Shown piece after piece: positions 1 through 5,362 of a stretch of DNA of 10,438 bases; position 1 is the stretch's first letter; each line of letters begins with the position of its first letter. The notes under the pieces were generated by a model that was not told the origin of the DNA, did not search any database, and saw only the letters and a list, made by a program, of their open reading frames with translations. The DNA comes from Octopus sinensis (Eukaryota), in NCBI RefSeq assembly GCF_006345805.1, contig NW_021827409.1, positions 1 to 10,438 of the forward strand, in the 5' to 3' direction. Both the position numbers and the translations under genes were made by a program.

Positions 1-483
1 GATGGTTTCAAAACCCTTATACGATATGTTTAGAAATAGCAGTCAAAACCGCTGTAAAGCCTGTTTTATAATATATCCTCTGTAAATTTTCCCAACTCAT
101 ATCCGGTTATTTTGCAGGGACTCAAATTCACCGGTCTTTTCTCATAATCGCTGTGCATGACATTTGAATTCAAAACTTGAATGTGTAGATAGCGGTTGAC
201 ATATTTCTCTTGCCGGTTGGGATACATGTTATCCGCAAGGTAAGGTCTTGCATTGATTTATATCTATAGGAATATTCCCCTGACGACACTAATGGGTCCT
301 TTTATAAGTCCCTAACATCGATATTGCAATAGGGAATTAACCAGTTAATTTCAAGTTGTGGATTCTATTTGTCATGTCACCCGAGACAGCTTTTATCGTG
401 AAGAGAAATAATATGAGTGAGGAAAATGGCTTTATATCGGTTTTGACTGCTATTTCTGAACGTGTAAGAGTTTTGAAGCCGTC
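1..483 (+). mobile_element. Foldback element A (inverted repeats 1-61 / 428-483) containing a hammerhead-like motif; left end may extend beyond the window
   Basis: Reverse complement of 1-61 (ggctttacagcggttttgactgctatttctaaacatatcgtataagggttttgaaaccatc) aligns to 428-483 (ggctttatatcggttttgactgctatttctgaacgtgtaagagttttgaagccgtc) with a few substitutions and one short gap. No TSD can be assessed. Confidence 0.7.
274..337 (+). ncRNA. Degenerate type I hammerhead ribozyme motif
   Basis: Stem I attccc (274-279) / gggaat (332-337); core CUGACGA (280-286); GAUA instead of GAAA (320-323); palindromic stem III attgcaat (323-330); AUA cleavage triplet (329-331). Stem II (287-319) pairs poorly. Confidence 0.45.
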
Positions 484-860
484 TTAGTTATAATTGTGAC
501 TTGTTCCTGATTATAAACATTCTACGCCAATAACAAAAATCCAAGCTTCAGGATTTTTCCCCTCTACCAATTCAGGGACGATACAACCTGGAGCCAACGA
601 ATTAGTAAAGAGACTCTTTTTATTACAAAATACAGACCCCTTTTGAACGCGTCTACAACAAACGACATATCCACCTCGGCCTTAGACTAACACAAACACA
701 CACGCAAATATTAAAAATGATACTCTCAAGAGATTCCCAAGAATTCATTAAAAAACAGTCCCAATCACTACTATAATCCATAACGAGCCAATTTTAAGAC
801 ACTTGACCATTTCACACCTTACTACTATCATACTACCTACATTCCTTCTTATTCTCCCAT

Positions 861-930
861 CTCTTTATTCTTCTTCTTCTCCTCTCCCTTCTTCTTCTTC
901 TCCACCTTCATCTTCATCTTCTTCTCCTTC
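861..930. repeat. Imperfect (TCT)n / CT-rich low-complexity tract
   Basis: tcttcttct..ccttcttcttct..tcatcttcatcttcttctcc; it produces the Ser/Pro-rich ORF 803-1039. Confidence 0.85.
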
Positions 931-989
931 CCTACCAAGAATTCACAACGACCTTCAACCCACAAGAGTAAACAAGAGAGAAAGAAACA

Positions 990-1190
990 GGCAGAAACAA
1001 GGAAAATGCTATTTGAACACTATGCAAATATTCTTTTAAAAGAAACTTTTCTTTTAATTTTTTCCAAAATTTAATTGTTTTCCATACTTACAGTTGAAAA
1101 AGTCTCAATGACTGAAACCGGTACTGAAATGTTTTTCATACAATTATTAGCATTTTCTACCTTGACTTTTTTCCATATATGAATATATAA
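990..1190 (+). mobile_element. Element B: probable 3' fragment of a Penelope-like/retrozyme-type repeat ending in (TA)n; boundaries approximate
   Basis: Hammerhead-like fold at 1091-1126, then about 55-60 nt of T-rich tail running into a TA microsatellite. No inverted copy seen. Confidence 0.4.
1091..1126 (+). ncRNA. Minimal hammerhead-like motif with altered core
   Basis: cag - UUGAAAA (vs CUGAnGA) - agtc/tcaat/gact stem-loop II - GAAA (1114-1117) - palindromic accggt stem III (1117-1122) - GUA (1121-1123) - ctg pairing with cag. Confidence 0.45.
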
Positions 1191-1219
1191 TATATATATA
1201 TATATATATTTTCATCTAG

Positions 1220-1247
1220 TTTCAGCTCACGAGCTGTGGCCATGCTG
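1220..1247 (-). mobile_element. Short fragment resembling the 3' end of the SINE or a related element
   Basis: tttcagctcacgagctgtggccatgctg resembles 9573-9600 tttcagtcatttgactgcggccatgctg; very short. Confidence 0.35.
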
Positions 1248-1281
1248 ATATAACTTCTCACAAATCTATCCATACAATCAC

Positions 1282-1385
1282 ATATATATATATATAATAT
1301 ATATATATATACCCACGTTACATATACCCACGTTACATATGTCTATGTATATATATATATATATATATATATATATATATATATT
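1282..1385. repeat. (TA)n microsatellite interrupted by a 15-bp tandem duplication (acccacgttacatat, 1311-1325 / 1326-1340)
   Basis: Read directly from the sequence. Confidence 0.9.
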
Positions 1386-1430
1386 AAATTTCTAAATATC
1401 TCAAAGAGATATAAGCAGTGGTGGAACGAT

Positions 1431-1859
1431 AGAGCAGTTGTCTACTGTCAACTTAATGTGACAGTCCCATCAAGGTAATTACATCACCGCTATTTAGCCC
1501 TTGGAAGCATCAACGCTTCCTGTCCGCCTTCACACATTTCCTGTGTCCTCATGTTTACAAATGGGAGACAAGCACCCCCAACAGCTAGGCCTGCATCCAG
1601 AGACATGACATGTTTCTGAGGCTTGCTCGTCATCAGTCTGGGGCAGCAAGGCCTGCGGCTGAAGATACCTGTCTAGGCTTTGTAAACATATATATATTTT
1701 CAGTGAAGTATATTCACTGATCACCAAAATGAGAATCATAAGGACACAGGAAATGTGTCAAGGCCGACAGGAAGCGTTGATGCTTCCGAGGGCTAAATAG
1801 CGGTGGTGTAATTCCCTTTATGGGACTGTCACATTAAGTTGACATTATACAACTGCTCT
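1431..1859 (-). mobile_element. Foldback element C: 123-bp inverted arms (1431-1553 / 1737-1859) with a hammerhead in the spacer
   Basis: Arms align ungapped with 9 mismatches in 123 nt. Complementarity resumes after a 50-nt indel (atgtttacaaa 1551-1561 / tttgtaaacat 1679-1689). No clear TSD; right end abuts a (TC)/(TATC)/(TA) microsatellite. Confidence 0.85.
1591..1646 (-). ncRNA. Type I hammerhead ribozyme, intact core, predicted GUC cleavage 3' of 1602
   Basis: Minus strand: ctgc-c-ccaga CUGAUGA c-gag-caagc-ctc-a GAAA cat-gtc-at GUC tctgg-at-gcag. Stem I 5 bp plus 4 bp distal; stem III ACAU/AUGU 4 bp; stem II 3 bp with a C-A opposition at its base. Confidence 0.75.
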
Positions 1860-3737: not shown

Positions 3738-3863
3738 GGCGCAGGAGTGGCTGTGTGGTAAGTAGATTTCTAACCAACCACATGGTTCCGGGTTCAGTCC
3801 CACTGCGTGGCATCTTGGGCAAGTGTCTTCTGCTATAGCCCCGGGTCGACCAATGCCTTGTGA
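3738..3863 (+). mobile_element. tRNA-derived SINE, 5' head only (octopus OK/OR-like family by recall)
   Basis: ggcgcaggagtggctgtgtggt (A-box-like) and gggttcagtccc (B-box-like); closely matches the reverse complement of the head of the full copy at 9551-10017; breaks off at gccttgtga. Confidence 0.85.
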
Positions 3864-3950
3864 TGAATGTGTGTGTGTGCGTGTGTGATTGTATATTACT
3901 TAGATCAGTGTCTGCGTAAGTCGCTACTCGGAGTTTTTTTTCATTATTAC
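3862..3950 (+). repeat. Direct repeat copy 2 (partner 3431-3528)
   Basis: See copy 1; the identical cores are 421 bp apart. Confidence 0.9.
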
Positions 3951-4077
3951 AGTCCTCAGGCGAATAATTGAATAAATATTATTATTCTGGCCGACCAAAC
4001 ACTTTATTTTATTTGCTTAATGTATTATTCCTAAGTGAAAGCATTATTTTTTTTTCTCTCCTTCCAATCCTTCTTTC

Positions 4078-4130
4078 CTCTCTCTCTCTCTCTCTCTCTC
4101 TCTCTCTCTCTCTCTCTCTCTCTCTCTCTC
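4078..4130. repeat. (TC)n microsatellite
   Basis: About 26 perfect units, read directly. Confidence 0.95.
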
Positions 4131-4266
4131 TTGCTCTCGTTATCTCTTTATCTCTATCTCGTTATATGTATGTTGTATTAGTGTGTATGCATAAAGATAT
4201 ATATAGATGCCGATATATATATGAAAGTATGTGTATATGTCTTTATGTAATCTATATATATATATA

Positions 4267-4480
4267 CCGGAGTAAACACATAAATGTGAAACAAGTGGGA
4301 AAAAAAGAGTACTCAAATACCAGTGGTAGAGTAATATACTTTATTTAAAGCAGCAGAAAATTCAACAAACCTGTTACTCTGAGTTTCTCCCGTTGCCGTT
4401 CATCGGACAGTTTTTGCTAGCAACGGTAAACTCAGAGTAACAGTTTTGTTGAATTTTCTGCTGCTTTAAATAAAGTATAT
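4267..4480 (-). mobile_element. Foldback element D (Penelope-like tail with 5' inverted copy), flanked by (TA)n on both sides
   Basis: 4334-4395 is inverted at 4421-4480 (atatactttatttaaagcagcagaaaattcaacaaa.ctgttactctgagttt...cgttg). Hammerhead-like fold on the minus strand at 4371-4415; 3' end at ccgg 4267. Confidence 0.75.
4371..4415 (-). ncRNA. Variant/degenerate type I hammerhead (CCGAUGA core)
   Basis: Minus strand: aaaaactgt CCGAUGA a-cg-gcaa-cg-gga GAAA ctc-a-gag UA acag. Stem I ctgt/acag; near-palindromic stem III ACUC-a-GAGU; GUA site; stem II has a GCAA tetraloop but an unpaired base. Confidence 0.5.
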
Positions 4481-4522
4481 ATATAATATATATATATATA
4501 TATTATATATCTATTATATATA
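4476..4522. repeat. Imperfect (TA)n microsatellite
   Basis: Read directly from the sequence. Confidence 0.9.
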
Positions 4523-4620
4523 AATTTAAAATGAGGTGAGAAATTAGATATTAATGTATTAACATCAATTTCACATCAGTGGTCTAGCATATAAAAAAGG
4601 TTCAGTAAAATTGTATTATA

Positions 4621-4790
4621 TACATATTAGAGGGAAACCACTATGTGGACACCCTTATGCTAGAAGTAGATCCGCTATTGTCTTACCCCTATGAAATGTT
4701 CTCAAGAAAAATTTAGCTAAACAACCAAAGCGTAATCGAGCGAGACAAAAGAAAAAGCAATAAAAATACTGGTTTCCCCTCTAATATGTA
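4621..4790. mobile_element. 170-bp mini-foldback / MITE-like element with 20-21 bp inverted ends in TA context
   Basis: tacatattagagggaaacca (4621-4640) vs tggtttcccctctaatatgta (4770-4790), one indel; TA flanks. Confidence 0.65.
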
Positions 4791-4817
4791 TATATATATA
4801 TATATATATATATATAT

Positions 4818-5362
4818 ATAAATGAAAGAATGGAGTCGAACGAAGCTTTTAACAAAATTCCTTTACTCTCAACACATGTTTCGAAGACTGCATACATGGT
4901 GTCCACAGTGATAATGAGTGTTTTTTAAAATAATCCGTTATAAGCAATGACGTCAAAATTGGTTGGAAGGAGGAAGTTCTAAAAATAGGAAGGGGGACAG
5001 TATGTAGTGCTGCATGTATGGGGATGCGACGGGTGTTTGCTTATGTTAATGAGTTTGAGTGTTTATGTGTGTGTATGTCCCCTTTCTATTTTTAGAACTT
5101 CCTCCTTCCAACCAATTTTGACGTCATTGCTTATAACGGATTATTTTAAAAAACACTCATTATCACTGTGGACACCATGTAGGCAGTCATCAAAAAGTTT
5201 TTGTTCGTCTTGAGGCTGATAGAGGTTCCTTGTCTTTCCTGATGAGAAGACGGCATAATGCACCCTTTATTCTTCGGATTAAGAGTATGCAGTCTTCGAA
5301 ACATGTGTTGAGAGTAAAAGAATTTTGTTAAAATCTTCGTTCGACTCCATTCTTTCATTTAT
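4818..5362 (+). mobile_element. Foldback element E: near-perfect long inverted repeat with a hammerhead in the right arm
   Basis: Outer arms 4818-4895 / 5285-5362 (2 mismatches in 78); inner arms 4886-4999 / 5076-5188, including a run of more than 90 nt of perfect complementarity; 76-nt spacer; left end in (TA)n, right end followed by caataaaaaaaaaa. Confidence 0.9.
5234..5314 (+). ncRNA. Type I hammerhead ribozyme, intact core, long stem II, predicted GUU cleavage 3' of 5309
   Basis: ctttc (5234-5238) / gagag (5310-5314) stem I with one GU; CUGAUGA 5239-5245; stem II gaagac-g-gcata / tatgc-a-gtcttc with G10.1-C11.1, capped distally by c(UUCG)g at 5272-5277; GAAA 5298-5301; short stem III AC/GU. 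Confidence 0.7.

Follow-up and report, generated by a model that had tools for sequence, protein, structure and literature searches.

The subject of this analysis is a 10,438-nucleotide stretch of Octopus sinensis DNA (NCBI RefSeq assembly GCF_006345805.1, contig NW_021827409.1, positions 1 to 10,438; hereafter the window), which contains five short elements, referred to here as A to E in order of position, each carrying a motif that resembles a hammerhead ribozyme. On balance, and with some reserve, we read the first 5.5 kb as a TA-rich stretch that has collected short terminal fragments of several retroelements that bear hammerheads, are unrelated to one another and belong to the Penelope-like element (PLE) type, either as 5'-truncated ends or as PLE-dependent derivatives. 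What the window shows directly is a non-random excess of motifs, together with foldbacks, TA-rich flanks and a lack of similarity between the elements, and from these features we infer an origin in PLEs, spread by retrotransposition and a head-to-head origin of the foldback arms. That non-autonomous elements bearing hammerheads derive from PLEs is an idea already in print (PMC7229834; bioRxiv 10.64898/2026.07.22.740005).

The five sites were parsed by hand using the standard hammerhead numbering, and the whole motif set is confined to the first 5.4 kb of the window. All five have the A15.1-U16.1 pair, a residue other than G at H17 (A in A, B and D, C in C and U in E) and a helix I that starts directly after the cleavage site, with lengths of 6, 3, 5+4, 4 and 5 bp in A, B, C, D and E respectively. 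The invariant core, C3-U4-G5-A6-N7-G8-A9 together with G12-A13-A14, is exact in E and C. A helix II that closes on the core is found in E (6 bp with a G-C closing pair, extended by 5 bp) and B (4 bp, A-U); C has only 3 bp behind a C·A mismatch, and neither sequence nor fold gives one at the junction of A or D. The folding stability of the isolated motifs is unremarkable, with z-scores from −1.0 to +0.6. The initial annotation had described five hammerhead cores with matching stems I and III; each is present where it was placed and the five are non-random as a set, but only E is canonical, and A and D break invariant positions.

Judged by its sequence, E is the sole canonical three-helix type I hammerhead among the five. 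The motif (5234-5314, + strand) reads CTTTC, CTGATGA, GAAGAC...GTCTTC, GAA, ACATGTGT, T and GAGAG, with helix I formed by 5234-5238 and 5310-5314, the CUGAUGA box at 5239-5245 and the GAA box at 5298-5300. Helix II, which lies inside 5246-5297, pairs GAAGAC with GUCUUC over 6 bp, is closed by G10.1-C11.1 and is extended by GCAUA/UAUGC. Helix III (ACAUGUGU, 5301-5308) is nearly palindromic, and U17 at 5309 places the predicted cleavage at 5309|5310, 53 nt from the end of the element. Folded in isolation, the motif retains helices I and II in the centroid structure, and for a dimer a 10-bp intermolecular helix III is predicted. An open reading frame (ORF) that begins in the CUGAUGA box ends 31 nt before the end of the element.

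The motif lies in the right arm of a foldback at 4818-5362, made up of a left arm (4818-4995), a loop (4996-5078) and a right arm (5079-5362), with inverted repeats at 4818-4895/5285-5362 and 4879-4995/5079-5195 that match at 97%. A segment of 96 nt in the right arm has no counterpart in the left, and this missing segment holds the 5' strand of helix I, the CUGAUGA box and the 5' strand of helix II, in other words the 5' half of the hammerhead; direct repeats of the form GTAKGCAGTC (GTAGGCAGTC and GTATGCAGTC) mark its two limits. Folded over its full length, the transcript of the element is predicted to form a hairpin of −330 kcal/mol (z = −30) in which the 3' half of the hammerhead pairs with the left arm, and in this model the core of E is sequestered in a perfect long duplex whenever the entire foldback is transcribed. 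The 147 nt that separate E, on its right, from the following TA tract (5363-5509) are unique sequence, begin with TCAATAAAAAAAAAAC and contain a small hairpin (GAGAACACGG...CCGTGTTTTC); they may represent an independent insertion or else a tail of E of unusual length.

Element C, in contrast to the complete motif of E, has exact boxes and a reduced helix II. Its motif (1591-1646, − strand) reads CTGCCCCAGA, CTGATGA, C-GAG-CAAGC-CTC-A, GAA, ACATGTCATGT, C and TCTGGATGCAG, with CUGAUGA at 1630-1636, GAA at 1614-1616 and a 13-nt spacer between them, in which helix II consists of just three pairs (GAG/CUC) behind the closing C·A mismatch. Helix III (ACAUGUCAUGU, 1603-1613) is a near-palindrome, C17 is at 1602, and the motif sits exactly at the foldback apex, so that helix I is itself the stem of the foldback. 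The motif fits the 'HHR_core' descriptor of PMC8557442; in the minimum-energy fold the CUGAUGA box is paired with the helix III strand. The foldback (1385-1883) has arms at 1429-1558/1732-1862 that are about 90% complementary, and a one-sided extension of 45 nt (1385-1428) is found solely at the 3' end of the hammerhead strand; the cut site lies 172 nt (plus 45) from the end of the element. C is flanked by (TA)n on the left and by (CT)n/(CTAT)n/(TA)n on the right, with no target-site duplication at its flanks.

The mismatches in the arms of C comprise two G·U pairs on one strand against two on the other, together with nine differences beyond compensation, and thus show no strand bias. This points to neutral decay of an inverted duplication at the DNA level and not to a selected RNA rod, and a rod-like RNA under selection is accordingly unsupported by these arms. 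In the arms of A, G·U pairs favour the + strand by five to one, which is a weak signal.

The motif of B (1091-1126, + strand; CAG, TTGAAAA, AGTC-TCAAT-GACT, GAA, ACCGGT, A and CTG) becomes a three-helix motif only when its core, UUGAAAA, is read as the U3-A8 covariant, a core variant known from the PLE hammerheads of Schistosoma (PMC4209133). Read in this way, it has a helix I of 3 bp, a helix II of AGUC/GACU with A-U at 10.1/11.1, a palindromic helix III (ACCGGU) and A at position 17, and its fold keeps helices I and II. A (TA)n tract begins about 50 nt downstream, and comparison of the window with itself yielded no inverted copy of B.

A and D have the appearance of relics. The motif of A (274-337, + strand) reads ATTCCC, CTGACGA, 33 nt, GAT, ATTGCAAT, A and GGGAAT; its CUGACGA box is exact, helix I spans 6 bp and helix III is a perfect palindrome (AUUGCAAU), but the 3' box is GAU instead of GAA, which changes the invariant position A14 to U, and the sole hairpin between the boxes stands 7 nt off the core on each side. 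A occupies a foldback at 1-484 with outer arms at 1-61/428-483 that are 80% complementary, has its cut site about 150 nt from the element end, and may extend past the 5' limit of the window. The motif of D (4371-4415, − strand) reads CTGT, CCGATGA, ACGGCAACGGGA, GAA, ACTCAGAGT, A and ACAG; here GAA is exact, the CCGAUGA box carries U4C at an invariant position, ACUCAGAGU forms helix III, CUGU/ACAG forms helix I, and A stands at position 17. Helix II cannot form in D, whose motif takes in both the loop of a nested hairpin and its inner arm. The foldback of D (4334-4480) consists of 53-bp arms (4334-4386/4428-4480, 98%) around a loop of 41 nt, is placed between the end of a larger foldback (3528-4333) and the (TA)n tract at 4476-4522, and has its cut site 42 nt from the element end.

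A strict type I descriptor applied to the window returns E alone, and C is added when a mismatch is allowed at 10.1/11.1; A and D are detected only in a test that dispenses with helix II and tolerates at most one defect. None of 3000 dinucleotide shuffles of the window produced a motif of the grade of E. In the class with three helices and no more than one defect, two motifs are seen against 0.04 expected per shuffled window, and with the boxes, helix I and helix III but no helix II, five are seen against 0.17; for motifs of the grade of B, with the U3-A8 core, the expectation is 0.0185 per shuffled window.

Because shuffling destroys the many palindromes of this region, a second control was designed to keep them. 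Every scaffold of helix I and palindromic helix III in the real sequence was examined for the true boxes, CUGANGA and GAA with at most one defect, in register, and for 539 decoy box pairs of the same composition. The true boxes gave five matches (A, C, D, E and a site at 3959 on the − strand), decoys averaged 0.14 and never gave more than 2, and this excess was stable across thresholds. Exact box pairs within the scaffolds numbered two (decoy mean 0.009), exact boxes with three helices one, namely E (decoy mean 0.002), and the reading of B with a U3-A8 core gave one match; here decoys averaged 0.006, a single one of the 179 having scored. When no structural requirement was imposed, the true box pair was only 1.6 times commoner than decoys (36 against 22.5).

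The five sites as a set are therefore non-random. The motif frequency lies far above both dinucleotide shuffles and decoys, and the concern raised in the initial annotation, that it might equal that of shuffled controls, has not been borne out. Strict descriptors and shuffles had suggested that A, B and D were chance matches, a view overturned by the scan for U3-A8 cores and by the decoy-box tests. The additional match of the decoy test, a sixth hammerhead-like site at 3903-3964 (− strand; UCGC, CUGAGGA, 15 nt, AAA, ACUCCGAGU, A and GCGA), has a helix III nearly identical to that of D (ACUC-N-GAGU-A) and is probably due to chance: AAA replaces GAA within an A-run, and the site overlaps the antisense tail of a short interspersed nuclear element (SINE).

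The inverted copies that the initial annotation described in A, C, D and E are seen as arms at 80%, about 90%, 98% and 97% respectively. Its further remark that sequence from the 3' part of the ribozyme strand recurs inverted on the 5' side holds for either strand of any foldback and so carries no information on polarity. The elements are indeed without mutual similarity, none having been found when the window was compared with itself. TA microsatellites, identified with Tandem Repeats Finder, adjoin B, C, D and E, each on one side or both, as had been noted: B is followed by the tract at 1175-1209, C lies between those at 1282-1384 (with a 45-nt spacer) and 1879-2146, D abuts 4476-4522 and E abuts 4784-4820, and further tracts stand at 2595-2657, 3595-3649 and 5511-5569. 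This series of TA tracts is a candidate common insertion target, but adjacency to TA on its own is weak evidence, because such tracts are dense here, at about one per 500 bp. Across the window, the units measure about 150-550 bp, and the hammerheads stand about 42-215 nt from the element ends.

These properties can be compared with what is known of PLEs, which are among the abundant repeat families of octopus genomes (PMC13282606, PMC8967140). The terminal repeats (pLTRs) of PLEs carry minimal type I hammerheads that are mostly solitary in truncated copies, with 'dual' motifs lying 100-700 bp apart on opposite strands (PMC4209133). PLE insertions show heavy 5' truncation, an adjoining inverted and 5'-truncated copy and a one-sided tail of 30-40 bp, and a preference for (TA)n targets is documented in the Neptune and Naiad clades; some Naiads, present as old remnants in Octopus species, carry a hammerhead core that does not fit the stem descriptors (PMC8557442), and it is this Naiad 'HHR_core' class with which C agrees. 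In vitro, a PLE cleaves and extends both target strands, and reverse transcription begins inside the RNA near its 3' end (PMC11167929).

A type I hammerhead that is short in helix I, long in helix II and palindromic in helix III, placed 40-170 nt from the element end and accompanied by an inverted copy and (TA)n flanks, fits the hallmarks of PLE insertions. Likeness to the pLTR hammerheads (PMC4209133; PMC8557442; PMC11167929) extends to the type I topology, the short helix I, the long helix II and the G10.1-C11.1 pair of E, whose values (5 bp in helix I and 6 bp or more in helix II) are those of the minimal type in PMC4209133. It further includes the palindromic helix III of all five motifs, which suggests action as dimers, and the core of B when read as U3-A8. 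In their setting, too, the two are alike: motifs are mostly solitary, the copies would be truncated, inverted copies lie nearby, the putative targets are (TA)n, and the hammerhead stands about 50-200 nt from the 3' end. The one-sided extension of C, at 45 nt, compares with the one-sided PLE tail of 30-40 bp (PMC8557442).

A sequence of events that would produce such elements can be proposed. The RNA of a master element would carry, close to the 3' end, a type I hammerhead whose helix III is weak and palindromic and functions in dimers. A GIY-YIG endonuclease would cleave a (TA)n target, and reverse transcription would be primed close to the RNA's 3' end. An early stop of cDNA synthesis would leave a 5'-truncated copy, often joined head-to-head with a second, inverted and truncated copy, and the outcome would be a foldback with both 3' ends facing outward and TA repeats at its edges. 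The scheme resembles twin priming, in that priming on two strands yields inverted, 5'-truncated halves within one insertion. Twin priming is the source of the 5' inversions of the long interspersed element LINE-1 (L1), in which the endonuclease is of the APE type as opposed to the GIY-YIG endonuclease of PLEs, and L1 inversions, unlike the foldbacks here, are not known to form near-perfect palindromes from one and the same 3' segment.

The copies in the window are themselves most likely inert, because only E has an intact core and that core would be sequestered in the full foldback transcript. Processing of these copies by their ribozymes, which the initial annotation had proposed, is accordingly unlikely, given that the 3' half of the E hammerhead would be locked in duplex.

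A scan of the window with Rfam models (cmscan) gave no hammerhead at the gathering score or at E≤10. This check had been recommended at the outset, and a positive control bears on how its result is to be read. The Poseidon_Ac protein (supplement of PMC11167929) was used as a query for PLE proteins, and two PLE loci were taken from the matches, one from lamprey (L002) and one from Tenebrio (L001). In the lamprey locus, the descriptor finds a minimal hammerhead (TTCAC, CTGATGA, A-GGCCGC..GTGGCC, GAA, ACGT, C and GTGAG), with minimal hammerheads at 5425-5464 (+), 698-737 (−) and 6025-6062 (−); two copies are oppositely oriented, and the 3' end of the + copy lies about 105 nt past the cut site, compared with about 42-215 nt from hammerhead to element end in the window. 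The Rfam hammerhead models at E≤10 miss these lamprey hammerheads, and since true examples escape it, the search is insensitive for the PLE class and its negative result on the window is uninformative for PLE hammerheads. PLE-type hammerheads are thus invisible to Rfam and are found by a decoy-box test on real sequence, which marks a gap in standard annotation. The Tenebrio locus, in which the descriptor found no hammerhead, has divergent (head-to-head) PLE gene fragments at 1829-2761 (−) and 3001-4947 (+), 240 bp apart. The Poseidon_Ac search, which covered reverse transcriptase and endonuclease, returned 4581 PLE proteins, with no cephalopod among the 120 matches listed. Exact look-ups of three window ORFs gave no match, nor did protein searches with the ORF from E and an ORF from a SINE; a metagenome scan with a 23-mer from E gave no match, and one with a 20-mer from the SINE matched a bacterial contig only.

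Several observations weigh against an assignment of these elements to PLEs. None of eight ORFs of the window (68-145 aa, including two that span the E and C motifs) has a Pfam match to RVT_1 or GIY-YIG, and, compared with PLE loci, the window is without an ORF for reverse transcriptase or GIY-YIG endonuclease and without a direct terminal repeat. Of the five motifs, four do not conform to the published descriptor, among them A and D, which lack helix II and carry substitutions at invariant core positions, and the window has no Rfam hammerhead match, although Rfam also misses real PLE hammerheads. E has (TA)n (4784-4820) on one side only, the other side being an A-run and the 147 nt of unique sequence, and the TA dinucleotide at both of its ends also fits a target duplication of the Tc1/mariner type. 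Classical MITE-like elements (miniature inverted-repeat transposable elements) share the window. The window may also have been chosen from many, which would inflate the significance of any single motif; the joint occurrence of the motifs keeps its weight.

The alternative that survives best, though we hold it to be improbable, is that the elements are distinct non-autonomous families, as the initial annotation proposed: short units of hammerhead and tail with 5' ends of their own, served by PLE enzymes in trans and representing monomeric relatives of non-LTR retrozymes instead of random truncations of autonomous PLEs. All units are short (about 150-550 bp), no coding remnant stands upstream of the hammerheads, the ORF that begins in the CUGAUGA box of E stops 31 nt before the end of the element, and non-autonomous hammerhead elements derived from PLEs are documented. 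The metazoan non-LTR retrozymes (PMC7229834; bioRxiv 10.64898/2026.07.22.740005) resemble the elements in being short, AT-rich and non-coding (units of 150-550 nt) with strong self-pairing and a type I hammerhead, and dependence on PLE enzymes has been proposed for them too. Retrozymes, however, are head-to-tail tandems of 150-450 bp units with a canonical hammerhead in each and give rise to circular RNAs, whereas the elements here are single, have one motif and form a near-perfect palindrome at the DNA level. In the absence of head-to-tail tandem units or of a direct repeat of any element, and with one motif in each, membership of the non-LTR retrozymes proper was rejected. The 5' truncation that is the rule among PLE insertions accounts for the short length with no need of new families, and the arm mismatches of C show no selection for RNA pairing.

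A more far-reaching proposal, which we regard as doubtful, is that the elements exemplify a large and diverse cephalopod group of foldback retroelements, each composed of a hammerhead, a tail of 40-170 nt and an inverted copy, specialised for (TA)n and mobilised by PLEs in trans. Transcription would yield long hairpins in which a self-cleaving motif occupies the apex or its vicinity, as in C, and the elements would have been filed as MITEs, unclassified SINEs or unknown repeats.

An origin as DNA transposons of the MITE-like or foldback type, such as Tc1/mariner derivatives with TA targets, is similarly unlikely; the hammerhead-like motifs would then be incidental or captured and would play no part in mobility. 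The elements share with MITEs and foldback transposons a small size, non-coding and AT-rich sequence, inverted repeats and TA-rich flanks; MITE-like elements with terminal inverted repeats are present in the window at 5866-6301, 7045-7520 and 4617-4795, TA dinucleotides stand beside E and D, the repeats reported from Octopus vulgaris include Tc1/mariner elements and MITEs, and neither a poly(A) tail nor a remnant of reverse transcriptase is seen. D and E have inverted repeats and flanks so rich in TA that any TA duplication would be masked either way. The arms, however, fill almost the whole element, unlike short terminal repeats; no target-site duplication can be demonstrated, C being without one; and B has no inverted repeat of any kind. 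The excess of true boxes (five against a decoy mean of 0.14) is left unexplained by such an origin.

Local, non-mobile inverted duplication, through hairpins or template switching at palindromic (TA)n during replication or repair and with motifs from an older insertion or chance, would suit the uniqueness of each element within the window, the TA tracts at most boundaries, the nested palindromes of D and E and the 99% foldback around a SINE (3638-3737/4162-4261), but it is very improbable, as it explains neither five or six independent palindromes with hammerhead boxes in register nor the complete ribozyme motif of E.

The remainder of the window holds further repeats. The large foldback that D adjoins at its right end (3528-3737/4162-4333) has inner arms that are 99% complementary, a TA tract in each arm and a loop of 424 nt that encloses an entire SINE along with a (CT)n tract; the foldback is free of hammerhead-like motifs. 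Copies of this tRNA-derived SINE are found at 3737-3944 (+, full), 9894-10018 (−, 92%), 6520-6620 (+, 72%) and 3448-3523 (+, 3' tail only), and ARAGORN calls no tRNA in them; the SINE is in keeping with the cephalopod genome supposed in the initial annotation, though no proof of it. The MITE-like element at 5866-6301 has perfect 27-bp terminal inverted repeats, TTTTATT at both flanks as a possible target duplication, and an interstitial telomere-like (CCCTAA)n array at 6161-6202. The element at 7045-7520 has 30-bp terminal inverted repeats and a direct, partial copy of 199 bp (8611-8809, 91%) 1.28 kb downstream, the two bracketing a GC-richer segment (43-49% GC) with a 145-aa ORF (8033-8470) that has no Pfam match. 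Two TA tracts enclose a further small element at 4617-4795, whose inverted terminal repeats (TATATACATATTAGAGGGAAACCA...) measure 29 bp. At 2764-3189, about 106 units of (ATG)n are followed by about 41 units of (AGA)n, and a complementary (TTC)n stands at 868-933.

If transcribed, the foldbacks would give long double-stranded RNA, which would be relevant to processes that depend on it, such as A-to-I editing. Editing of this kind is prominent in cephalopods. Editing has been linked to the abundance of double-stranded RNA (PMC5625713). If the assignment of the elements to PLEs is correct, the window would provide an invertebrate example of the pattern of (TA)n-targeted, head-to-head insertion that work on PLEs in vitro has begun to explain. 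Confirmed genome-wide, it would mean that a part of the repeats of this genome now regarded as MITE-like or unclassified are the footprints of PLEs, and both repeat annotation and estimates of PLE activity would change.

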